DNA of 62,987 bases, the filler included, from Hyphochytrium catenoides (Eukaryota > Protista > Hyphochytriomycota): the NCBI GenBank assembly GCA_900088475.1. It is 8 parts of 8 records of this genome, joined end to end, with 100 filler letters (N's around TTAATTAATTAA, not from the genome) between each part and the next. Parts side by side here need not be neighbours in the genome. Positions count along the whole stretch, not along the records: positions 43,385 to 59,326 come from FLMG01002216.1; 7 more parts are not named here. The stretch is one strand, 5' to 3'. Positions 43,385 through 59,326 of the stretch are shown piece by piece. The notes under the pieces were generated by a model. It was not told the DNA's origin, did no database searches, and saw only the letters and a list, made by a program, of their open reading frames with translations. How positions within the stretch are numbered: the stretch's first letter is position 1; each line of letters starts with the position of its first letter. The position numbers and the translations under genes were made by a program.

Positions 43385-43839
43385 GATGTCTGTCCCTATC
43401 TCGCCTTCATCGATCGTCTCCCCGATTGTCTCCCTTCCTTATCATTGCCCTCAACGGGGTGGAGGTTATGTAGCTCTTTTCCTCTTCTTTCTAGGACGCT
43501 ATTCCCTTCTTCTCTACTACCTTTCTGCCTAACTCTTAGACGTTCTCAACCTCTGGCTGCTTGTCCTTCCATGTCCACTGTCTTCTCTTGTTGTCCTTTG
43601 TCCGCGACAGGGGATGAGTCAGTGCCACGCCCGTAAGGACGAGGGAGACAAGTCTCTCTTCTCTTCTAGTGCCTGAGAAGGCAACTTTTTCTTTAAAAGA
43701 CGAGAACTGGAGGCCTGGGAAAGGGGAGAGGAACGACACATCATGGCTTAGCTCTGTCCTTCCTCTGTCCTAAGACTTCCAACCTTCAGCTTCAGCGCCG
43801 ACGGAGAGCGGGAGCTGTGCCTCCCGCGTGCTCTGGGTC

Positions 43840-46231
43840 ATGACAGGCACTAGCTCCAATGTCGTGGGATTAGTCTTGGTGAGACTCTAGTAGAGACTCC
43901 ACAGTCGTCTTGGGTACTCCTGCTTCTGTTTCCTCCTCTTTCCCCAGAGATGATGGCGCCCCGCGGTGCGCTTGATCTTCTCATTTGACTTAGGATGATC
44001 TTCTCTATTTCTGTCGGCTTCCGATGCCTATGTAACACCCTCCGTCTAACCTCACTCCCCCGGCGCTTAACCTCTCTCCTCCGGCGCTTAACCTCTCTCC
44101 TGTCCTGTCCCCATCCCTCTCAGGCCATAGTTGGGGCCATAGCCTCCAACTTCGGCGTGAATGTGCAGAAAAAGTCTCATAGCTCGAACGCTGAGCGGCC
44201 AGCGGACGAGCAACGAGTCTATTGGCGCCGTTGGTCCTGGTGGGGTGGCTTCTCCCTTGTCGTTGTGGGCGCTGTGGGCGACTTCCTGGCGCTCGGGTTT
44301 GCAAGCCAGAGTCTCGTGGCTGCCGTTGGGGGTAAGCTACATATCTAACAACTCACAATAGGTCACCTCTGCTCTGTGCCATCCTCTGCTGATGTGACCA
44401 TCAAAGGCTACAAGGGCTCTGCGCTACGTGTTCGCCCTCTTCCCTACCGCTTACCGCTATGATATACTTTCCGTTCGGCCGGTGTTAAGGGCTTAGCCCC
44501 CTCTATCAGCGCGAGCTCATCCTCTCCAGACGAATGATCTGTCGCGAGCTTTATTGCCTCTGCTCCTCCAGCAGCCGTTTTCCGCAACGGCGTCTTGACT
44601 CCAGGGCTTTCGTGGCTTCTTCCATATTTGATGTCAATCGCTCTGTTCCTTTCTTACATCTCGCTTCCTCGCCTGGGCGGACCTCCGGGAGCTTCGACCT
44701 CCCCAGCCGTTTGCCTCGTTGTCTCACCAGCGCCTTCGTCTTTAGGTGGCACTACTCTACTGGCGAATGTCCTGATCGGTCACTTTTTCAACAAGGAGAA
44801 GCTCCTTCGGAGCGACATCCTCGGCATTGCGGCCATCACCGCGTGCGTCATTATCACCGCAGCTATCGCTCCTCCTTCCAAGGACTATGACCTCTTCACC
44901 CTAAAGAGGCTGTTCCGACATCCTGCCTTTATCATCTACGTTGTCCTGCAGGGAGTGGTGCTACTCATCCTACTGATGATTGTGACAGGATGGACCGTGT
45001 ATGACTTCTTTCTCTCGCTCTGCAGTAAGTACGCTCTCCACTCCTGGCAATGATGGCCGAGTAGGTTTTTAGCGTCAAGGGAAGCGTGAGGCGACGAAAA
45101 GGAAGAAGCACCTTCGAACACATGGGCTAACCCCTTCATCCAACCTCCCACTCCTGCTTCGTTCAGGAAAGCTTGGGATTATCGCCAAGTCTAATGCTAA
45201 ACCAAGGGCAGCAGGAAAGAACAGCCACTCGCAAGATAAACCTAAGGACTCAGAGCTCTCAGAGGCGGGACTTAGCAAGCGAAAGGTTGACCACCTGCCC
45301 CCAAGCGGCAACCTTCGTCTGCCGACCGGACGCGAAAGAGCGAGCGAAAGACTGATGATGACAGATCCCGACACAGACGGGATACCATACTATTACGCTA
45401 TGTTCTCTGGCATGTTTGGTGCCATGTCCGTACAGCTAGGCGGCTGCACTGCTAAGGTCTTTCTCACGACGCTGTCCGGAGTGAATCAATTCATTTACTT
45501 TGAGACGTACCTCTTCCTTCTGGGCATGATCTTCACTATGGCAGTGCAGACACACTTCCTGAACAAAGCGCTAGAGCTAGGAGATGTGATGAGCGTCTTC
45601 CCCGTGTTCCAGGTAAGAAATTCTTCAAGAAGAGCCTTTCAAGCGCTCTCATGGAAGAGATTTGAAAGGATCTGCCTCATTCTATCTCAGTATAGACTCC
45701 TGCCTGACTATCCTGGCCATCCTATGATTCATTGTCCTCAGCATGTAATCCTCTTTCTTGACCTTTGCCCTATCTTGTGACTCTTTGGGTCTGCCCTCTC
45801 CTTTGTCTGGAGGGTTGCAACCGATCAGTCTTACGGGGACCCTATTCCGCCTCTTTCACTGTCTTCAAGATATTCTGGATTGGATTCTCTGTCGTCGGCG
45901 GCATCGTGTTCTATGAGGAACTGGAAAGCTTCACTGTCGTTCAGTGGGTGCTTTATCCCATTGCACTACTGCTAGGAGGACTGGGTAAGAGCTTCAATAG
46001 CACATATAGAACTGAGGAGACAAAGAAAAGAGTGATAAAAGAGAGAAGAGACACAGAGAGTGCCTGTCACAAGACGTTTGCGTCTAAGACTTGGGACTGA
46101 CTCTGTGTCTTCGACTAGGAATATATCTTCTCACTGCGCATGGCAATATACGAACCCCGGTCGTGCCACCCTCAGGAGACGATGAGCATATAGACGCAGA
46201 AGAGTCAGGACAGGACTATAAGCTGATGTAA
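43840..46231 (+). CDS. NIPA-type (DMT superfamily) Mg2+ transporter-like membrane protein, ~6 exons
   Basis: MTGTSSNVVGLVL|AIVGAIASNFGVNVQKK...WWGGF...GDFLALGFASQSLVAAVG|GGTTLLANV...QTHFLNKALE...VFPVFQ|IFWIGFSVVGGIVFYEE...GIYLL...DYKLM*. Confidence 0.88.
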
Positions 46232-46341
46232 CAAAGAGAAATAGCCTCTCCAGGCTCTATCATGTTACGTCAAAAGTCATGTCTTCTTCATTTGGGAAAG
46301 GACCTACGAGTTTCTACATCGCTGCCCTTCATCCTAGTTCT

Positions 46342-49300
46342 CTATATCTCTAGTTCGTCCACCTGAGTGAAGTAGGATGAAGACGCGTCACTAGGTCTCA
46401 CAAGGTCTATCTCTTCCTCGTCTGAGCCTGAGGACACCCGAGGAATAATCTCGTCAAAATCCACAACAGCGATGTCTTGGACCTTTTCTATGGCTTCTCC
46501 ACACGCTATCATGGCCTGCCCACCATAGAAGGCAACGTCTGGGTCTGGGTCTTTCGTTAGGTGATGCAGCGCTTCTTCTAACTCCTTAAGCTGCTCAGAT
46601 GAGCCGGTTGAAAGGAAGCAGGACAATAATGGTGAGGAGCAACGAAGAGATTGGTTGCGGAGGGCGGATGGATAGTCGATTTCGAGCAGTCTTGCGGACA
46701 GACCACCAATGTGAACGTATTGCCTGGAATTAGAACAAAGGAGAGAAAGAGCTCGAGCACGCAGCAGGTAGTATTGGAAGGCAGGAAGCAAGAGAGAGGC
46801 TTCAGAAGAAAGAAGACGTAACAGGCACCTCACCTCTGCATAACCGCCTAAGAAAGGACCCAGGACGGTAAGCTCTCTTGCAAGGACAAGGCGGACATTC
46901 ACGACCGCATCCTACAGCACCAGTGTTCAGATATACATGCTATGAACACAGGAGCTTGCTAACAGTGACTCTGTGGTGACTGCATTCCTACTCATTGCCC
47001 ATCGGTCTGTCCTACTTGGCCGACTCTTCCCTAGTCAATGAGCCTTGCAAGTCTCTTACCCGGCTTAGTGGCAAAATGTGCGCCCTTACAAAGTCCTTGA
47101 GTCCCGCAGCTGCCGAATACTTCGCAAGGGTTTCCTACAAGGGAGCATTTATAAGAGGAAGAACCGTAACTTTTAACGCAGTGGCTGCCAAATATGTACC
47201 TTAGTCTGTACTATGCCAAGAATGCGAAGCTTGTGATTCCTGTCCTTCAGCAAACTCTCTACGTGTGGAAGCACAAAAGGCGACCACTCCGCAAAGTCAG
47301 AGCCTTCCATGAGCCTAAGGCAGAGAAAGAAACAATATAATTTTAGTATGTCGGCAAGCTGAGGTAAGGTCCATAACTGCATGGAGAACAAAGCGGAGAA
47401 AGAAGGGGTGCCAGCGGACAACGGCCGACGCATGCATCTAAACAGAAGATATGCATTTAGGTCCGATATAAAGACGAAGCAGATAGATTTCAAACATCAC
47501 TCTTACACTTTGAAAATGGAGAACACGCCTTGCCGCACTTCGTGGACAGAGTCGTGCAGCAGCGAGTGAATGATGGGCCTAACGTGCAGCTCAAATGCAG
47601 ACGTCCCTAGCCACTTTAGCAACGGAGGAATGGCCTATATCCATAGAAGCGTGAGTCAGAAGCTGCCACAATTACCATCCTCCATCCCATGGTGAAGGCG
47701 CCTTCACTGCCTTCACAATTACCTCTACTAATGCCAATCTTGCCCTCCAATCTTCCTGGGCCCCAAGCTTCATCAGCGCGGGAAGAACTACCTCTGTAAA
47801 GGCATCCTTCTGGATCTCCTACAGTGAAAGACTGCGGTAAGCATGGTCTTGAGAGAGGCGGAGACAGGAGGGCTTCCTGACATGTCACTAACAGCTTAAG
47901 AAGAGATGACTAACGAGTGAATCAGGAACTGAGACAGCACGTTATTTCGGAGAGGCAATTGAAACGGAGACAAGTGAAGAGGGACTGAGGGCTTAAGGTT
48001 CGTTCTCTCGTACAAATCCAATAAGATCCAAATCGTCCGCAACCCGAATGGCGACTTTGGCGTTACTGTTCTCCAACATTTGTACCACGACCGGGACCAA
48101 GTGCTTGATGGAATCCTCCTTGCCTAAGAAAGCCGCCAAACTGCAGATTGTGGCCGCCAGAGACTAAGGAGAGCCGAGCACGACGAGATTATATGAGCGC
48201 GGGGTGAGATTGAAAATTAGGTAACACACAGGGAAGGGTAACTCGAAAGGAGTAAGCGTTCGCACAGAAAGTGTGGACTTTGAGTGGTTGGTACAGGCCC
48301 AGAAGCAGTGCCTTTACCAGCTGAGGTTGTTCCCTTTTGTCATCCAGTGCACCCTCAGCGACTGTAGGAAGTACAAGCTGACAAAAGTACTGAGAACCAA
48401 AAATTTGTGCCACAGAGATGACTATTCGCGCCGCTGCCGCTCGGGTCTCTGCGATGGAGTCCTAGACAAAGAGGGAGGCAGCAGATCGGAGAAGCCAGAT
48501 AAAAAAGGAGCCAAGAACGATCAAGTAAGCGTCTTTCCTAACTCCCATGTCAAGTGCACCACCGTGATCCGTACAATGACGATTACTCTCACCGCCGTAT
48601 CGTGGTGCGAGAGCTAACTCCCTTCTACCTCTGGTTCCTGCTAACTGCCATCATGGGTAAAGAGCCTCCTTACCTCTTTAAGTTGCCTGCAGTATAATGC
48701 ACATAATCTTTCTATCAATTCTTGGGCTTCGTAGGCCTTCTCCACGTCTGTTAGATCAAAATTCGCGTCGAAGTAGTCTGGAGATCCTGGTCCACCGTCA
48801 GACCCGCCGTTGCTTACGCTTGCTGACCTTTCCTTTGCGTCTGCCTCCTGGACTAGTGCCTGTGATGGGCGATACATAGGTACGCATAAGACATGCAGCA
48901 TGTCAGATATTCCCGACGGAATATTGTCAAGAGTAAAAGGGGAGTGCCGGTCAAGAGTTTAGCGAAGAATGACTAGAATGGACAGTGATGAAAGCGTAGA
49001 AAGCTGAGACGAAGTTGATAGTATCGACAGAGCGCTAGATGAACGATTTAATAGAAGACCCGGTAATGGAGAAGGCAGGTGAACCCCAGGTTTGAGGAGT
49101 GAGAAGGGTCCACACCTGTACATTTATCTCGTGGCAGAATCGCGTGAAATTATCGCATACAGCCCGTCGTACTTGCCAGTTTCTACCACAGAGTGGAAGC
49201 AGTGCGGTCCAAAAGAGCAAAGTGAGACTCGCTTGGAATGTCCCCATCAGGCAACTTCCCTCCTTACCTATCATCGGAGAATGCAACTAAAAGATCTATA

Positions 49301-52300
49301 AGCTTACGCCGTCTCAGTCTAAACATGGCCTCCTCATCATGCTTAGCCCTACAACGCCAAAGGAGGGGACCGAAGAGTTTTTCCACATGTTATAGTCAGT
49401 AGCGGAACCCAAAGGGATGACGGAGGCCTTGTTATCTTCTTACTTGAGACTCTGTTGGGAGGTCACCTTGCGGCCGTTTCGATCCAACACAGGCATGGCC
49501 TCTGAGTCACTTGCTCCACATCTATTCATTTTTGCAAGTTCAACTGCATAGCAGCGGATGAGTCAATCTACAATCAAGAAACCCAGGGAACGCCAACAGC
49601 ACTGGCACGAGGACTTTCAGATAAAGAAGGAAGCACTCACTGCGCAGGTAACGAGGGCAATGTCTAATCAACGGAATGTGGCCTCGGGTGATAAAAGGTG
49701 TCGGGTTGGTGCATAGCAAGGACAAAACCGTACCTAGGTACTCCACTGCCTCTCTTCGAGAGACATCCCTCTCAATAAATACAAGTTCCTCCAGGAGAGG
49801 AAGAAGCCAGTGCCATGCTGACTCATCGCAAGCGACGGATACCATCTGCCCTAAAGAACCCAGGGCTTCATCCAGCACCAATCGATCGTCATCTAGACAA
49901 GTCTAATACAGGGAGGCGAAAGCGGACGACGGGAAGAGGTAAGGCCTAGATCTTAGTCCCTACAAGCATAAGGAACACTCACCCTGGCAAAGATCCCTCC
50001 TAGGAAAGGAACGATTATATGCAAGCGACTACTGGCACCATTAATGAACTTAAAGTCTGTGCTGTACGTCTAAACAGGGACGAGTGGAGAAATGGAATGG
50101 TAAGTAAAGGCCCGACTACTTTGCTACATCGTCAAGAAGGTAGTAAAACCACGCCCTTCGTTAAGCCCTCATGGTTCATCCCCGTTGCTTCACCCCACAG
50201 TCTTGTTTATGGGGCTAGATGTGTATCACCTGCGGCATGGCCTGCTGCCAGCAATACAGGTCATGATCATCGAAGTCATCTTCAGTGAAACTGTACACTT
50301 TCGGCACCAGCGCACAGATCAGCATGGGCGTGAGAGAGCGGCTTGTCTCATAGCTGTGGTTAGATTATCAGGGAAAGTTTAAGAAAAATGAGAGAGAAAA
50401 GAGTAGGGCCGCAAGAAGAATGGTGGTGAGTAAGAAACAATGTCAGCGGTAGGACGTTAGATAATGCAATGTGCATGCCTGCTACTGCTCATTCTCTTCA
50501 GCATGGGGATGAAGTGGGTCCCGATTTGATATACTGAGAGAAACTCAATGATTCCGCAGAGAGTATCTCCAGCCTTCTTATACACGTCCTTCTCTCTGAC
50601 TGTGGAAAGAATCTCTATCACCTGGAACAGCACATGCGAAATGGAAAGCTTGCAGATCTCCATCGCATTAGCGTCTGACGAGGGCATGGAGACTGGTTAG
50701 CACACATTTAGGTCAACATGCCTCCTCCCTTCTGTCGGAGCCCTTCGCTGGCCTTCTTACCTATAGCAGCCAAGAGCCGAACCATATCTGAGCTACCAGG
50801 TGGTTGTGATATTAGGAATGGCAACAATACCGGCCGCAGGGCCCCGGTGCACTGCCAAAGAGTGAATGCAGTTTGATCAGAGTAAGCCAAGTGATGAAGG
50901 AGTGCGGAGACCGCCACCTTCCTAGCTATCGACTAGGACCAACTTTGATGAAGAGACAGACAAAAAAAGACTGGGCAAGGACACGGGACGAAGAGTGCCA
51001 TCGTATGGTGCTGCCTACCTGTAGTGCGGATTGGTCTGTCGGCCAGGCCAAATTGGCAGGGCACATAGTGAGTTGGTGCAGCCCCAAGAGCCAATACCGA
51101 ATGTTCATAGCTGCAGTCACAGTTCTAAAGCTCGATGTGTTGTTCAAAACCTGAAGCCCGGGAGGTAGGTTTGAGCATTAGTACGGGTGAAAGGATAAAT
51201 AATAAACATCATGAACGAACACAAGGATCCTTGACTGATCTCGCCCAGCATACCTTGTTTGACTTTCGCAATCGAGCCACCTCGCTCTTGCCTAGCCTAA
51301 GCATGTGCATCTTCGTTGGAAGAGGCGCCTCCTACAGGAACAGATAATGAGAAAGATTCAGTATGTTCATAGGTCCACGTAAAAAAACACATCTGAAGCT
51401 CTCAATAGGCCTGAGTGTCGCCCTTTCTCCTTACCTTGATACGGGTGAGTATCTCTATATGGTTAAACGGAGCCAGATTCACCCCATTGAGGGTAAGGAT
51501 CAAGCTATAAATGCAAGAATGAACCATTTAGTAGGCGCGATCAGGGTTGTATGACAGCAGGAGTGTGACATATGAGTGAAGTGATAGCAGTTGGCCAAAA
51601 ATAGAAGAAGAATGTTTTGTGACTATCCCGTCAGAAGAAAGATATGCTTGCCTTGGTACAGTAACTCCTGCAGCGCTTGCCGCAGAATGATCTTCAGTTG
51701 CCACGATGACGACAAAATCGAACATTCTCTCTACGGTCTGCAAAGCAATGTTAGGCCGTGTCTTTCACAAGCAGAGCTCTGTGGGTAAGGTTTGGGACAA
51801 AGGGTGACATGTGAAATATAACGCCAGATCAGCGCCACTTGAGGCAGCTGCGGCCATGGACAGCACAAGAAGAACGGTGTTGCCGGTATCCGGGAAGAGG
51901 GAGTCCATTCTCCTTCGCATCATAATAGAGAGCAAAAGAAGTACATCATCAAGAACGGACAGCAGCTCCTGACGTACCAGGCCCATGACCTTCTGATTCA
52001 TTGTGACGTGGTAAATGTCGCTCTTGTGTGGAGTGGCAAAGACAAAGCGGATGAACTCATTCTGATGTGACGCCTTGCGAACTATCCAATAGTACTGCTC
52101 CAAGGACTTGATCTTCACATCGTTGATCTGGGGGCAGCAGCACATTTGAGGTATCATTCAGATCTTTGGATAAAATGGGGCAAGCGAGTACTAAGGAGCT
52201 ACCCTCCACGCCCCACAAAGAGAGGAGGAACCGGGTAGATTAGATAAGTAGCTTGTAAGGGTGACCCTCTATTATGGGAGAAATTATGGCAGACTGCAAT

Positions 52301-54149
52301 GAATGCCTTACCTCCTTCAGTACAAGACCTGGTATAACTCCATATCGATATGGTGTGGAATCCGATTCCACTGCAGCCACTGTCACAGAGCTCCGCTGCT
52401 GATAGAGAGAGAGCGCGCGCGTCTCCGTAGCCTTCATCAGCACCAGTCGCCGCCCAGCCTTGCGACCTCCCTCATGTCCAGCCCTTTGAGGTATCCAAGG
52501 CGTGTAAGGGTCCAACCACTAAGGTGCTCATGTCAAACAGTCAAGAGTGCGAGGGTAACTTACCATGGCGCAGGATCAAGTATGATAATCCCCTTATCTG
52601 ATAACACAAGGCCAATAATGGCATGACGATGTCTAGCAGTAGATGAGAATAAGTTCCACTGTGAGTTTTTGATCAGGGATAAGGTCAAAAGGAAGATCAA
52701 TGGAGCGCGATTGGCTGATGTGGAGGTATTGAAGACCCTGAAAGTGTTTAGAAATCACCCAGGACCTCCACAGACGAACATTGAAGAGGTATACAAGCTC
52801 AAGCCAATACAGATCGATAAGAAGCACACAATCTTCTCCAAAAATGGCATATGGTGATCATTCCCACGATCATTCACGTGACATGCTCTATTGCTGCGAC
52901 CACCATCCGGCTCACCTGCTCTGGACTTCTCTCTCCCATTTGGCGAGGCCCGTCGCATCGGTATCCTTAAAATTGTCCACAGGGACGTGGCAGCAGCCCG
53001 TCTGCAGCACCCCAGTCAGTTTCACATCATGCGATTCCGCACACACAACGATACATCACAGAAACCGACAACGAGGGATACACACGGGAACCCTACAGAT
53101 ACTATCGAGCAGTAAAGGCTGTAGCGCTATGGAAGTAAAGTGAAGGTGAACCAAAGCAGGCAGCTTTCAAATACCTTCCCATAGTAGGAAATGACGATGG
53201 AATCTCCTTCACTCTCTGTCCGCAAAAGGAACGTCCCCACAGGCATGGTGCTGAGCAGGGATTCTATGTCAAGAGAGAGAGGTAAATGACCAGAGTCAAA
53301 CAAGGACTTTTTACAGGCAAACATGCGTAAATGGAGCCATACCTGCCGCTATCCTACTCATGCTTCCCACATAAAACTTGTAGATCGATGTTCGCTTCAG
53401 ACAGTCCAGCTATACAGACACATTCAGTCAGAACCCCCAGGGTTGAAATGACTTCGAAGGCGGAAGACGCAGCCAAAGACTCGGTCCATCAACTAGGGAA
53501 CAAACAGACCTTGGTCAGGGGCACTGGTGCAGCCTCTTGAATATTGAGGGGGTTGCTTGGCTTGCCAACTGAGCCCGAGTGGTTCCGGCCGTCGAGACGT
53601 CTTGGCTCGGAGGTCGCGCTGTGGGAGGACGGCACATGCTCATTGTCTCCACGGAGTGAACCACTGCGCTGACCCTTGGTGCCCAGCTTGCGGAATGTGT
53701 TGGCAAGCTTGCTAGCGATGTTGCCCTTTGCTTTGGACCTGTCAGACTGTCCTCGGAGAACAGAGAGAGAGAGAGCATGAGGGAGGGATATGATCGGGGT
53801 TACTAACCAGCATGGCTGGGGACTTCGACGCACCTCATCAATGCGCTCTTCTAGCCGTCTGCCTCGACTATGGGCTCTTGCTCTTTTCTCCTCATCGTCT
53901 TCGTCCGCTCTATCGTCCTCCCCACCCAGTCGAGCTGGGGGGCCTGTCTTAGACCTAAACTCTTGCAAGTAGGCACTCATTTGTTCTGGCGTGCCATTCA
54001 CTAATCAAGCTCTAGATCCGTTACATTAAGGTACAGTCTTTCGGCCCACCGTCCTCTGTGGCTCAAATGCCTGGCTGGCTGTCCCGCGGACGAGGAGAAG
54101 GGGGATAGCCAAGCGTTTATAAAGCTCTGTCCTTACTTGACAGCTTCAT
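46342..54149 (-). CDS. Multidomain SH2 - PDZ - PDZ - PP2A A-subunit(PR65)-like HEAT-repeat protein (start codon tentative)
   Basis: More than 20 exons splice in frame. SH2: FYVGSMSRIAAESLLSTMPVGTFLLR...CCHVPV. PDZ1: VAAVESDSTPYRYGVIPGLVLKEINDVKI. PDZ2: MGLTVER..VVIVA..SAASAAGV..LILTLNGV...NHIEILTRIK. PR65-like HEATs: THFIPMLKRM, LLPLLEEL, NWQVRRAV, ETRAAAA, EDWRARLALVE, DAVVNVRLVLA, LTKDPDPDVAFY. Confidence 0.8.
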
Positions 54150-55504
54150 TGTGAAAGCAACGGATCAGTTCCGCATTGCTCTGGCACCTTTGCTCGTCGC
54201 ACCCCAACGTCATACACACATTGGAACCGCTTGCACTTGTCAGATGGAGCAAGAAGTAGCAGCGGATCCTTTGCTCGTCCTACAGTCCTTCCAAGAAGCC
54301 TACCAATCTGAGCTTTGATCAAGCTCTTCTTTTCTCTCTCCAAGCCCGGACGCAGAGGCGAAGTAGCAGTGCGTCAACGCTGAGTCCCGTCAGTACTCTC
54401 AAGAGCTCGATCTATAGGCCTCCGCCCGCAAGCACATAGTCCTCCCGCAGCGTCAATCTGCCAATCTCTGCAGACATCAGGCTCATCTCTCATCGCTCAT
54501 CGCGGTTGAGAATGAGAAGAGACAGAGCAGGGAGACTGAAGTTGGGACGCGCTCCGCTGACACACAGCGAGTGAGGGTAACAGGGGAGGAAGAGCAGAAA
54601 GAGAGACCTGGAGAGAGAGCCAGAGCAAGTGCCAGAGATGACGAGAGTCAGGAGAGATACCCCAAGAGAGGTGGAGGATGGTGTAATAAGGGGTTGGGGG
54701 GCGAGACAGAGCTATGAAAGTCAGAGACAGAGCAGCGGAGAGATAGCAGGTAGCTGGGGTGTAGAGAGAGAGAGAAGGCTGAGAGAGACAGAGGGAGGAG
54801 ATGGTAGCGCCCTTCGTCAGCTTCTGGTGCAGTATCAGCCTTCAGGTAACCCAGTCCTTAACCGCCCTGCTACAAATCAGGCTGAGTTTCAATTCTATCC
54901 TCCTCCCATTCTTCCTAATCGTACGCCGGCTGGGTTGTCTAATGGGCTGATGGAGAGCCTCTTTCTTGCGCTTTCTTCCTCCTTCCCCTTCCTCCCTCCG
55001 CTCACTCTCTTTCGCTGGATTGTCTCAGCTCTCCCATCTCCGTTTCCTTGCCTATATCTCATCGCGCTCTGTCTCCTATTAGTTAGTTATTTAGACCTCT
55101 CAAAGAGATTGTTCTCATGGCTCTGTCTTCTACCTCCCATTCTGACTGTTTCCTTGCTATCAGTAAAAAAGGGCAGAATACTTGACAAAAGAAAAGCAAG
55201 AAAGCCGTTTTGGCTCTGTTCGGGTGCACACTGCAACACCCAGAACACGACGGACCACTATCCCATAGAGGATCAGGAATAGGAGGGAGAAAGTGATAGT
55301 ATGTCAGGAATCCAACAGCCATTTTGGCACTATCCCAGATGAAGCCCTAGCTAGCCCTTAGCGTTCCTGGTAGTTGATCAATCCTAGCAGCTATCCTAGC
55401 ACAGAGGGCTTCTGATAAAAACAGCGTCATCTTAGATAGTCGTATTTCTTATGTACAAACATCCAGCGGTCGCTACGGGACCAATACTCCAATAACCTCT
55501 AACT

Positions 55505-58500
55505 ATAATATAGACCGTATATGCCCAAAGAACCTAATATAGTCGTAACCGTTGAGGAATTGATGATGGTTTGGTGAGGTTGCTGCTGAGACATTATCTA
55601 TCCTCTGCTCTGAATCTGCATCCATCTCTGTGTCGATTCTCCTAACAATCACAATGGACTGAGCTCTTGAAGCTCGACGATTGGATGACTTGGAGGCCTT
55701 GACTCTTTGGTCGGATACATGGGAGACTCTAAGTGATGGCCATGGAGGCGACGGTGAGAGAAAGAGAGAGAGAAGCTCAGCGTTGAAGAACTCATCCTGC
55801 TGGATGAGAAGAAGGAAGAGGTGGCGGAGAAAGGGATTGTGTATGAGTATAACTGTTAGACGGTAATCTCTGTTGATGAGGAGCCTTGGGTCAGGGGAGC
55901 CAGTGCGGCTACCAGGTCCAGCATGAAGGCATGTTTCTCTTTAAATGGTCTGAGAGATTCCAGTTCCTCTAGGGGCAGAGCTTGTCGATAGTGGTCATCC
56001 TGATGTTGGCCTAATTGACTTTGCTCTCGCACGACTGCATGGACAATGTTGGCAGCTGCTGGCTCAGGATCCGTTTCGACAATTTCCGGTTCTTCTTCCG
56101 CCTCCTGAATCGCCAAGACTTCAGCGAACGTATCCACACTGATCTCAATGCTCTGTCCGCGCTAGATCCTACCTGCTTTCTGTTGCTCCATAATGTCTGT
56201 TTCTCTCCTAGGCTTTTCTTTCTCTTCTCCCNNNNNNNNACATGTCTGGAATGCAAGAAAGGAAAGAGAGTGTGCAGAGAAAGAGAGAGAGAGAAACAGC
56301 CACACGTACTAGCTCTAGCCGACGGTACGCCGCGATCTGTTCATCAACCACCTCTTTGAAGGACGTAAGCTCTATTATCGGCAATAACCACCTGTCGCGA
56401 CCAAAAAGGACAGTTAAAAGCGGAACAGAGATTGGCACTCTTCTCAGCCTTTCGTGCAAACTTACCTAGCAATGGTAGAGAGAGCTGAAGGGATCTGCTT
56501 CTCAATCTGTGAAAGTCTCATCCGGCTAAAGACCAGAACTGCCCTATTATCTGTCCTTTCATTGTCTAGGCTAGTAGGACAAGGTAGACCGCAGTGTGCA
56601 TAAGCAGATGTGACCCAGTTATTTACGTCTCGTTGCTCTAAAAGGCGCGTCTCCTGAAAGACAAAGGGAGATAGGGTTGGTCGAAAGATATAGAGGAAAG
56701 AGAAGGCAACCTACTGCAAGAGAGAGGGGAGCGCGGACCGATAATAGAATGTCCTCTGACTATCAAAATATCTGAAGAATGCTGTTTTACCTTTACCAAA
56801 GCGGCAAGCGTAACTTCCCTGTACTCTTGATGCTCATCTAAGTATTTGACACTACTTCCCCGTTCCTGAGATGGACGACGGGATATTTTGCGCTTTGGCT
56901 GGCTCTGGCTGGTTCGATAGTGCTAGAGAAGGCAGGACACATCCAGAGAAAGGTTTATGGGACAACACAAATGGAGACCCTTCCCCAACCCAGCAACCAA
57001 CCACCAACCACCAAGTGGCATTTACCTCTTCTGATAAGATATTAGCGAGCTTGTTCAATATCTCTTCCACTGCCACTTGGACGCGCATACAGGACAGGCT
57101 GAGGGGATCTTCCTCCTCAGGAGCGAATGGGAGAGTCGACCTAAAATAAGCGGCTGCCCCTTGCGCCGCTAAGAGAGCCAGGCTTGTTAGAGGCTGTACC
57201 CTGGATCGAACAAGATGCTCGGAGAAGCATTAGGTAGGACAGCGAAACAGTATACAGCCCTTCCCTTCACCCAATAAAAAATACTAAGTGAGACAGAACG
57301 CGTCTCCCGGCTTGGCAGAGTGGGTTTACCTTCACTTGACCCTATGCTCTTTCTGTTCCGTGCCGATCGTGAGCCTTCTGGAGCCTCCTCTTCCCGCTTG
57401 CGGGGCAGGAAATAGCCTAATCTCCTCATCCTCCAGTCCAACAAAACGCGGACCTTTTCCGCAGGTGACTTTTTGGAGGCCGAGAAAGAGGGGTGAAGCA
57501 TCTTTGAAAGCAAAGCCCGAGCGACGATGTCGTTGTCTGTCTTATTCTTGGCCCCATGATCAAGAATCTGAAAGCAAAGTTTGTCAATTGGGGCTAGCAA
57601 AAGATCAAGCAAAGCATCTTTTACCTCGACTGCAAAGTCCAAAAGATAATCCACAACGGCTCTGTTGATAGGAGGTAGGTTATCCAGTAGAAATATGATT
57701 TTCCCCTCATAATCACTGAACGACAGCTTGCCTCCTATGAAGCTCTTCTCTGTAGCTAGAAGGAGCTGCAACCAAGGAGAAAGTGCGTCTTATGGGCTTT
57801 TTGTAAGATAGGAGATATTTTTGCTGCCAGAAGCAAAATAAAACTGGCGTCGTGGCGACAAGACGCCGACAAGAAAAGAAAGCCCGGACATCTGCTACCT
57901 TGAGCGGGACTCATGAATAATCAATGGACGAGGAAAGCGTGCCTCACCTCAGGATCTAACCCTGGCCCAGGGGGTATGAGCGGCCGCGGCAAGTCTTTTA
58001 GCCACTTGACAAGGAGAGAGATGAAGTAGTTCGGATCCGAGAGGGAGGGATCTCGGAAATCCAGGGTATTGAGATCCTGAAGACGGGCCCCATCCAGATA
58101 AAACGAGGCAGAATGTAAACTTAGGTTTGCGTGGGAAAGCTTATACAGCCAACTCATCGGGGCTAGAACTGGCATGATTACCTGCAGGATATTGCTTTCT
58201 AATCTGAGCGTTTGAAGTAAACCTGGGAATGTGATTCCGCCTAACATTTATGGCGTCCAGACCAGGATAAATTAGGATGGCGGGGTAGTGCATGTTAGGT
58301 CAGGAAGTTCCTTTCGAGTGTTTCTGGGATCACCTACCCGTGTCTCGGATGAGCTGGCAGAGAAGTAAAAGGATGGTAGGTACGGGTCGGTCCTCGCTGA
58401 GCTCAAGATCCTCCAGGGGCTTTCCAAACGTCGTTACTAGTCCTGCAACATTGAGTTAGAGTAGGGCTTCTCATGTGTCTATGGTTGAAGCTTGCCCTCT

Positions 58501-59306
58501 TCCGAGGTTGCTGTCTGCCTTCCACCTCAGTATTTATAAACCCATCCCGTCCAAGGACTTCCATCTTACCCTAGGTCTAATTCTTTGATTATCCCCTTCC
58601 CATTGTATTTACTTTCAGGTTCTAGGCCCCATAAGTATCCTTACCTTGAAGCTCCAAAAGTTCTGGGCAGGGCCTCATTGTGACGCTAAAGGTCAAAAAG
58701 CCCCTACTAGCTGATAAGGTACTAGTCAGTTAGGTTGAGTGGTCTGGGCATATCGATAGCCTTTGACGGCGGCATATGGGCCAAGTTATGACTACGCCGT
58801 TAAGGAGCATGCCACACGGGAGTATCGCAATAGCAAAGGCAGAAAAGGTCACCTGTTTTATAGCTTGACACTTGACTTTGAGAGATTATTGTGCCACTCG
58901 CGACTTTTCCTAGTTCAGAGGCGAGAGAGACATCAAGGCTCATAAGAGCCTGTTTCCAAGAGTAGTTCGTCCCAAAAGTTCCACTATTGTGAGAGGTCTA
59001 ACAAAAAAGACAAATCGATCAGTAAACCAATACTGCATAATGAAAGAGAGGTTCTTCGTCTCATTACCACCTCAGGCTTCTGTGGCTGGGTGGTGGTCTT
59101 CATATTGTTTACAAGGCTCGTCACTGTTGCTGCATAAGGAAATAGGTGAGAGAGGGACAAACCACGACGGCAGCAGCCATTGAAATGTGATACGTACCGC
59201 CCTTCGACCCGTCTTCCTTGCCTTCGTCCGCCTCCGGATTCTGGGGTCCCAATGAGGACTTCGATGGGGACGATACCTGTTCAGGTCGACGAGTATCCCC
59301 ATCCAT
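55505..59306 (-). CDS. RhoGAP-like protein with Gln at the arginine-finger position; 5' exons and 3' end uncertain
   Basis: Exons ~58442-57455 give TFGKPLEDL..VPTILLLLCQLIRDTGGITFPGLLQT...SLLVKWLKDLPRPLIP...LDNLPPINRAVVDYLLDF..ILDHGAKNK, followed by helical/coiled-coil-like exons. Confidence 0.72.
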
Positions 59307-59326
59307 TTAGAGGAATGGGTAGAGGA

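Follow-up and report, generated by a model that had tools for sequence, protein, structure and literature searches.

The window analysed here, a stretch of 62,987 nucleotides joined from eight parts of the Hyphochytrium catenoides genome, carries, in the part taken from contig FLMG01002216.1, a candidate gene on the minus strand that runs from an ATG at position 53980 to a stop codon at 46342 (all positions are those of the window, and all features described below lie on the minus strand). The exon model was made by hand and comprises 28 exons; the 27 introns between them measure 65-283 nt, 25 with GT-AG and two with GC-AG borders. In a script check, the hand-built model showed no internal stops and phases that agree throughout, and the predicted product has 1,192 amino acids. 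The claim of an earlier note that a single continuous spliced frame exists on one contig was thereby borne out by a stop-free model of 1,192 codons, and the motifs quoted in that note were found on the minus strand where it had placed them. The gene is invisible in the ORF list because its exons are small, which agrees with the earlier statement that the ORF track misses it. An automatic gene model from a dynamic-programming finder based on codon usage was rejected, as too many exons were called, and the finder was dropped. A RhoGAP identity that had been considered for upstream ORFs had no support in Pfam.

The coding model (46342..53980) begins with exons 1-7 at 53980-53834, 53746-53510, 53306-53175, 53001-52916, 52632-52564, 52483-52312 and 52127-51978, and continues with exons 8-14 at 51737-51652, 51504-51435, 51331-51254, 51150-51019, 50932-50761, 50674-50479 and 50353-50230, exons 15-21 at 50069-49983, 49902-49734, 49543-49444, 49348-49268, 49182-49116, 48859-48674 and 48461-48318, and exons 22-28 at 48163-48014, 47818-47723, 47634-47507, 47314-47200, 47134-47060, 46911-46834 and 46593-46342. 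Exons 1 and 2 (53510..53980) encode a charged low-complexity N-terminal region (residues 1-128) to which a Pfam scan assigned no family. The position of intron 1 is uncertain because this intron is stop-free and in frame. A further first coding exon of 13 nt (54137..54149, encoding MKLS..) would add 11 residues; it is optional and unproven, with a donor of 9.1 bits and an acceptor at 54000 of -3.8 bits.

The exon map could be compared with natural variation, as contigs of another run with the same organism label (run X1) align with the window and are independent of the model building. Of the 40 SNPs listed within the gene (from 67 differences in total), 36 map to predicted introns and the four in exons are all synonymous (binomial p 9e-7); the eight indels within the gene likewise all map to predicted introns. 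The exon/intron map is thus backed by an independent run beyond chance, and the exons are under purifying selection. The exons of the SH2-like and PDZ-like region contain none of the 40 listed differences (67 in total), and the flanking introns contain many. The X1 contigs that aligned to the gene showed no joints, and a search for runs of any kind returned only DNA-labelled runs or runs of unknown kind, with no RNA run listed.

The SH2-like and PDZ-like modules

The SH2-like region spans exons 3-5 (52564..53306; residues about 129-224). An SH2 domain had been claimed for this region on the basis of two motifs, and the arginine of GTFLLR and the histidine of CCHVPV are indeed present, but the match to the Pfam SH2 profile (PF00017) stays below threshold, scoring 15 bits where the gathering cutoff is 21, and concerns only the exon with the FLLR motif (profile positions 12-40 of 77; E 0.028). 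This exon matches no other Pfam family, and its two top matches in the PDB are SH2 domains as well (E 0.2 and 0.7). In these alignments, GTFLLR in exon 3 corresponds to GTFLVR of SH2 structures, with the FLVR arginine (beta-B5) kept, and CCHVPV in exon 4 supplies the beta-D histidine, the spacing between the two motifs being as expected in the spliced model. The match spans about 40% of the domain, from helix A to strand C only, the helix-A arginine is absent in the alignment with 2rvf, and a pairwise alignment with the SH2 domain of v-Src (from an avian sarcoma virus contig) covered the FLVR strand only. The other exons of the SH2-like region gave no Pfam SH2 match. Splicing of the C-terminal half of the SH2-like region is ambiguous: an alternative exon at 52765-52660, combined with an exon 6 start at 52518, keeps the frame just as exon 5 does, and in either version one splice site is poor (in the alternative exon the donor, at -6 bits). 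By eye, the alternative exon resembles helix B of SH2 domains; it has no Pfam support, and by codon scores it cannot be told apart from exon 5.

Two PDZ-like domains follow. PDZ1 (52032..52458; residues about 233-313) is encoded by exons 6 and 7, with intron 6 inside the domain, and PDZ2 (51281..52019; residues about 318-400) by the last part of exon 7 together with exons 8-10, the last strand (MHMLRLGK) being encoded by exon 10. A profile built from the PDZ1 domains of the E. coli HtrA proteins DegQ, DegP and DegS was run on the spliced protein and recognised exactly two stretches, which coincide with the two predicted PDZ regions, and none elsewhere. The stretch in PDZ2 (residues 346-393) has an i-Evalue of 6.6e-4 (p about 5e-4) and that in PDZ1 (residues 241-289) an i-Evalue of 0.25; for the whole protein, P is 1.2e-4, and an equal score was reached in 1 of 3,000 shuffles. 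With 8.7 bits the model scores just below the genuine PDZ protein Prc (11.2 bits) and far above 24 non-PDZ controls, none of which exceeded 1.3 bits. When PDZ2 was used in phmmer, DegQ, DegP and DegS were the top three among 29 E. coli proteins, matched at their PDZ positions, and hhalign placed PDZ1 and PDZ2 together in register with HtrA PDZ1 (P 0.001). The internal similarity of PDZ1 and PDZ2 has a z of 2.6. As judged by eye, MGL occupies the expected position of the GLGF-type carboxylate-binding loop in PDZ2; PDZ1 reads ALSL there and contains no glycine. Single PDZ exons, each of which encodes at most half a domain, matched neither Pfam nor the PDB, half a PDZ domain as query gave only noise in the ESM Atlas, and in a genome scan for PDZ comparators, near-identical enterobacterial DegQ sequences were all that came up. 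Of the two PDZ-like domains proposed earlier, PDZ2 is thus supported by its resemblance to genuine PDZ domains in profile comparison, and PDZ1 is a weak candidate. A reading of 52157-51768 as HEAT repeats 1-2 with their own start codon was discarded; this stretch covers the latter half of PDZ1 and runs into the beginning of PDZ2.

The HEAT solenoid and the C-terminal tail

Exons 11-28 (46510..51150; residues about 410-1137, with the HEAT part proper at about 454-1137) encode a predicted HEAT solenoid that resembles PR65, the A subunit of PP2A. In exon-wise phmmer searches against the PDB, only PP2A A subunits were found, apart from designed repeat proteins, and five exons matched in collinear order: exon 13 matches A-subunit residues 82-134 (E 2e-4), exon 22 as the best exon residues 339-385 (E 1e-15, 59 bits), and exon 23 (47723..47818), which is HEAT repeat 11 and has WRAR for the WRVR of PR65, residues 392-421 (E 3.8e-5); weak matches link exon 24 to residues 421-456 and exon 28 to residues 546-579. 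Most exons gave no phmmer match to PR65. Repeats 1-2 (exon 12) are unrecognisable, which is why the count of 15 repeats is a deduction, and an assignment of exon 12 to repeat 3 was abandoned, since repeat 3 is exon 13. A Gly/Ser/acidic insertion lies within exon 20. Ridge motifs of the WRAR and D-x-V-x-V-R types are present, and repeats 11, 12, 14 and 15 are among the best conserved; in PR65, these four repeats hold the catalytic subunit, and the WRAR residues of repeat 11 presumably have a role in this binding. Sequence comparison of the single exons confirms, in collinear order, that the HEAT part is homologous with the PP2A A subunit. The alignment to PR65 that had been proposed by eye thus stands as far as the collinear matches are concerned, but not as evidence for a canonical A subunit: as most exons are undetectable by phmmer and even the best exon reaches only 59 bits, the HEAT part is, judged from its sequence, a divergent paralogue.

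Past repeat 15, the protein ends in an acidic tail (46345..46509) with the terminal sequence VDELEI. When a piece of the last exon was searched with HMMER against 1.84 billion representative proteins, only an 82-residue fragment of one relative was recovered, besides repeat noise; neither a homologue of full length nor an annotation turned up among these representatives. The fragment (P0001) comes from a contig of 921 bp in Logan run SRR22387817 and is 56-58% identical overall; it shows conservation of exons 27-28 and of the tail motif, RPSDASSSY and VDELEI being identical. Word-index searches with pieces of exons 11 and 12 and of the PDZ region yielded no match, nor did metagenome scans. The VDELEI tail is a putative PDZ ligand.

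One gene or two, and which kind of scaffold

The link between the N-terminal modules and the solenoid is intron 10 (51151..51253), which separates the last exon of PDZ2 from exon 11, the first of the HEAT exons, with phase 0/0 at the junction. In leave-one-out weight matrices, its donor scores 8.5 bits and its acceptor 7.9 bits, values that are reached by only 0.4% of decoy GT and 1.2% of decoy AG sites, so that both sites exceed the median of the gene and outrank about 99% of decoys, and the number of in-frame pairs as good as this one that is expected by chance is about 2e-4. In addition, one X1 contig (record 4) covers 50312-51517 including the junction and confirms the continuity of the contig independently. 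Because the splice signals are strong and an independent contig spans the junction, a single predicted gene is favoured over two genes, and we consider it likely. The alternative would be two neighbours on the same strand, an SH2-like/PDZ/PDZ adaptor gene with its stop at 51212 and a PR65-like scaffold gene starting at an ATG in exon 11, in which case the fusion would be an artefact of exon chaining or the two genes would be cotranscribed and then parted by trans-splicing. It is in agreement with such an arrangement that the solenoid is complete without the N-terminal module (its first PR65 match, exon 13, already corresponds to A-subunit residues 82-134), that in-frame ATGs in exon 11 (at about 51109 and 51070) could start a HEAT-only product, that read-through of the exon 10 donor leads to a stop after 14 codons, and that the run search gave no RNA run; also, an in-frame GT..AG pair is estimated to be expected by chance in such an interval if site quality is ignored. 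The chance estimate changes once site quality counts, however, as the donor and the acceptor of intron 10 are on par with the best introns of the gene. Two genes would also have to fit a 3' end and a promoter into about 100-140 nt, whereas about 1.7 kb separate the gene start from the end of the nearest minus-strand ORF upstream, the interval is intron-like in length (103 nt) and composition, the organism shows no hint of operons or of a spliced leader, and the splice sites lack a strong UUUUCAG signal of the nematode type. Two separate genes, whether joined only by the model or cotranscribed and parted by trans-splicing, are therefore unlikely.

If the locus is a single gene, its parts could still differ in function from what their names suggest. 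The HEAT part may be a scaffold of the PP4R1 type or of another PPP-family phosphatase, or a HEAT protein that has lost phosphatase binding. Only a minority of exons match PR65 and repeats 1-2 do not, sequence identity falls far short of what true A-subunit orthologues show, the exon 20 insertion and the 55-residue tail are absent from PR65, and as the PDB contains few other PPP scaffolds, PR65 would be the best match regardless. On the other hand, the matches are collinear along the whole A subunit and not confined to one repeat, and conservation is among the highest in the repeats that hold the catalytic subunit, where WRAR stands for WRVR, which makes this possibility a rather improbable one, though one to be reckoned with. 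Still less probable is that the N-terminal module reads no ligands, so that degenerate or merely similar folds would form the extension of a lineage-specific HEAT scaffold. The sub-threshold SH2 score that extends from helix A to strand C only, the helix-A arginine missing in comparison with 2rvf, the weak score and glycine-free loop of PDZ1 and the lack of Pfam or PDB matches of the single PDZ exons would fit such a decay, but the FLVR arginine and the beta-D histidine have been retained, PDZ2 has its MGL loop together with significant similarity to genuine PDZ domains, and the exons of this region are free of listed differences while their introns are not. The explanation that accounts best for the data overall, and that is probably correct, is one predicted gene for a protein of about 1,192 residues that combines an SH2-like module and two PDZ-like domains with a divergent PR65-type HEAT solenoid.

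Proposed function and comparison with known systems

From the N- to the C-terminus, the predicted protein would consist of a charged stretch, an SH2-like module with the phosphotyrosine-binding arginine, two PDZ-like domains, about 50 further residues, a complete but divergent PR65-type HEAT solenoid, and the conserved acidic VDELEI tail. A PP2A-family catalytic subunit might be held on repeats 11-15, and the N-terminal module, positioned at the end where B subunits dock, might serve as a built-in targeting subunit, with the protein's own C-terminal tail as a possible ligand of its own PDZ domains. Taken together, this would be a self-targeting PP2A-type scaffold that brings a Ser/Thr phosphatase to complexes marked by phosphotyrosine or C-terminal peptides, with VDELEI as an autoinhibitory clasp that is freed by competing ligands. 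We offer this full mechanism as a speculation of rather low probability. As the HEAT part is divergent, PP2A-type binding is deduced from a few conserved ridge motifs, and because its sequence has diverged far more than those of true A-subunit orthologues, PP2Ac binding cannot be taken for granted.

Like PR65 (PPP2R1A, PPP2R1B, Tpd3 in yeast), the predicted protein has a HEAT solenoid that is collinear with the A subunit from about residue 82 to the C-terminus, and the ridge motifs of repeats 11, 12, 14 and 15 are kept. PR65, however, consists of HEAT repeats only and is targeted by separate B subunits, whereas the solenoid of the candidate follows about 400 residues with one SH2-like and two PDZ-like regions, has an extra insertion and a conserved tail of 55 residues, and differs in sequence far more than orthologues do. 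PP4R1 (PPP4R1), the HEAT scaffold of PP4, is PR65-like, divergent and equipped with insertions, and in these general respects resembles the candidate; to our knowledge, it has no SH2 or PDZ module. A covalent link of reader domains to phosphatase activity, by which targeting and activity are coupled, is known from SHP2 (PTPN11), PTPN3, PTPN4 and PTPN13, but in these proteins the reader sits on the catalytic domain of a tyrosine phosphatase, and here it would sit on the predicted scaffold of a Ser/Thr phosphatase, which is another family and another subunit. NHERF1/EBP50, X11/Mint1 and tamalin are PDZ adaptors that are closed by their own C-terminal PDZ ligand, and the candidate shares with them the combination of tandem PDZ domains and a conserved hydrophobic C-terminus (..ELEI) in one polypeptide, but in the candidate a solenoid of about 700 residues lies between the PDZ domains and the tail, and self-binding is a purely conceptual proposal. 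Non-exhaustive literature searches revealed no report of an architecture that combines SH2, PDZ and a PP2A scaffold, in line with the earlier note, which stated that no such described protein was known to its author.

The value of the finding is limited by the fact that it concerns one locus, for which the run search gave no transcript, in one sparsely sampled lineage, and by the unusual domain combinations that are common in protists. In all described PP2A cases that we know of, specificity comes from exchangeable B subunits, and readers that are covalently attached to the scaffold would, if the prediction is true, be a different solution to PP2A targeting. Phosphotyrosine and PDZ-ligand signals would then be wired directly to Ser/Thr dephosphorylation in an organism of protist grade, and the fusion may be read, in the 'Rosetta stone' sense, as a hint of cooperation between SH2/PDZ adaptors and PP2A-like scaffolds.

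Gene model and variation within the locus

The piece 43385-59326 is eukaryotic DNA with a G+C content of about 50% and numerous short open stretches on both strands. On its minus strand, exons were chained by hand, base by base, using canonical splice sites, phase consistency and, where available, collinearity with known domains, and the resulting gene runs from an ATG at 53980 to a stop at 46342 its 28 exons being separated by 27 introns that are 65-283 nt long. The earlier note had claimed one continuous spliced frame joining SH2-like, PDZ and HEAT parts, and this has been borne out: a script that placed each exon via its end sequences read 1,192 codons in one frame without a stop. The introns comprise 25 of the GT-AG and two of the GC-AG type (51651-51505 and 50478-50354, minus strand, with the boundaries AAG/GCAAGC and CAG/GCATGC), and both of the latter are needed for the frame and for collinearity with PDZ domains and PR65, the scaffold A subunit of PP2A. 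An optional 13-nt exon at 54149-54137 (minus strand), which has a weak acceptor, would possibly add 11 residues.

No RNA run turned up for the organism; the locus is present in DNA runs under the same organism label and in a few soil and rhizosphere metagenomes. Contigs of X1, an independent run under the same organism label, were aligned to 48150-54149, and 40 of their 67 differences from the window were listed. As the pattern of variation is independent of how the model was drawn, it can be used as a check on the exon map. Predicted introns hold 36 of the 40 listed within-gene differences, and every one of the four exonic ones is synonymous (binomial p 9e-7). The eight indels within the gene are likewise confined to predicted introns. 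The SH2-like and PDZ-like exons contain none of the listed differences, whereas the surrounding introns are rich in them. This shows that the exons are under purifying selection. The X1 contigs also confirm the assembly at this locus, and a single contig (50312-51517) bridges the junction between the second PDZ domain (PDZ2) and the HEAT part. Intron divergence between X1 and the window is about 1% over 48150-54149. In several places one X1 contig gives way to two at half depth (about 200 versus about 400), which indicates either a heterozygous diploid or a run that contains two strains.

On the plus strand, a gene of several exons (43600-46100) encodes a magnesium transporter of the NIPA type (Pfam PF05653, E 3e-7 and 4e-9 for two exon ORFs). 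It runs towards the 3' end of the studied gene, and as the gap between the end of its last ORF (46100) and the stop at 46342 is only about 240 nt, the genome is compact. Between the studied gene and an upstream minus-strand gene lies a 217-aa plus-strand ORF (54629-55282) that matches no Pfam family and may be non-coding. The long ORFs of the upstream gene (57187-58247, minus strand), RhoGAP-like by eye, had no Pfam match even at E 5, and the region of that gene includes an assembly gap of 8 N (56232-56239).

Identity of the domains

Searches of PDB sequences with single exons of the HEAT part matched almost exclusively PP2A A subunits, and did so collinearly: exon 13 with A-subunit residues 82-134 (E 2e-4), exon 22 with 339-385 (E 1e-15), exon 23, which has WRAR where PR65 has WRVR, with 392-421 (E 3.8e-5), and, weakly, exon 24 with 421-456 (whole-sequence E 0.038) and exon 28 with 546-579. 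Exon 12, where repeats 1-2 are expected by position, had no match in PDB sequences. Judging from these collinear matches, the solenoid is homologous to PR65 along its full length but far more diverged than would be expected of an orthologue. The A-subunit-like scaffold proposed earlier thus holds as to homology, but when judged against PDB sequences the HEAT part is better filed as a PR65-like paralogue than as a canonical A subunit. Further features of the predicted protein that PR65 lacks are an insertion within exon 20 and an acidic tail of 55 residues. The exon 21 piece (48192-48461, minus strand) has a weak Pfam match to DUF6971 (PF22318; E 0.011, 16 bits versus a cutoff of 27).

As the coding sequence of each N-terminal domain is divided among two to four exons that differ in frame, the Pfam and PDB searches covered single exon pieces. 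Single PDZ exons had no match in Pfam or PDB. The spliced model was therefore compared with E. coli loci carrying degP, degQ, degS, rseP and prc, and with 24 genes lacking PDZ domains. With PDZ2 as phmmer query, DegQ, DegP and DegS were the top three among the 29 proteins, at their PDZ positions, and when the 1,192-residue model was searched with a profile of the three HtrA PDZ1 domains, only aa 241-289 and aa 346-393 matched. These correspond, in register, to the two PDZ domains that had been predicted (whole-protein P 1.2e-4, with the score reached by one of 3,000 shuffles). In the mixed set the model scored 8.7 bits, just under Prc (11.2) and far over all non-PDZ controls (at most 1.3), and hhalign of the PDZ1/PDZ2 pair with the HtrA alignment gave P 0.001. 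Of the two PDZ-like domains claimed before, PDZ2 is supported by these comparisons, and the identity of PDZ1 is weaker when taken alone.

For the exon encoding GTFLLR, SH2 is the sole Pfam family matched (E 0.028; 15 bits, where the cutoff is 21; the match covers positions 12-40 of the 77 in the profile), and the top two PDB matches are both SH2 domains with the same strand aligned; the next exon encodes CCHVPV at the correct distance. Downstream of it, two splicings keep the frame, one with exon 5 (52632-52564) and one with 52765-52660 and exon 6 from 52518. In both of them one splice site is poor, and codon scores fail to tell them apart. Exon 5 is slightly preferred in view of the clustered SNPs at 52501-52531. 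An SH2 domain, as earlier claimed, is thus suggested, albeit with a Pfam score under the cutoff and ambiguous splicing beyond CCHVPV. The SH2 comparator, an IMG/VR contig of 5188 bp, is of the avian sarcoma retroviral type: an ORF for SH3, SH2 and tyrosine kinase domains precedes an env ORF for avian gp85.

One gene or two

The HEAT solenoid would be complete without the N-terminal module, and exon 11 contains ATGs in frame, so that two genes, one for an adaptor and one for a scaffold, have to be considered. Such a split would leave an intergenic gap of only about 100-140 nt, and the interval between exons 10 and 11 resembles the remaining introns in length and composition. Exon 10 encodes the final strand of PDZ2 and is then followed by a donor of 8.5 bits, with the exon 11 acceptor of 7.9 bits 103 nt further; by matrices from the other 26 introns, these scores are reached by just 0.4% of decoy GT and 1.2% of decoy AG sites, and about 2e-4 in-frame pairs this good would be expected by chance in the interval. 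It is thus probable that PDZ2 and the HEAT part belong to one gene. Transcription from a promoter inside it, or an isoform consisting of the HEAT part, is conceivable.

Relatives and a possible function

When 1.84 billion representative proteins were searched by HMMER with the piece from the last exon, no relative of full length emerged, and a single 82-residue fragment (Logan assembly) of 56-58% identity did. It shares the tail motifs RPSDASSSY and, at the terminus, VDELEI without any change; its 921-bp contig includes exon 27 too, with an identical exon end. Searches with other exons and metagenome scans gave no further relatives, and the SH2-PDZ-HEAT architecture was not found in the literature searched, including one genome paper; sampling of the lineage is sparse.

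A PP2A-family catalytic subunit would be held by repeats 11-15, the best-conserved part. B subunits dock at the N-terminal end of PR65, whereas the studied solenoid is extended there by the SH2-like module and two PDZ domains, which would take the place of a targeting subunit within the protein itself. Its PDZ domains could plausibly bind its own C-terminus (..ELEI), which is conserved and hydrophobic, in the manner of NHERF1 or X11.
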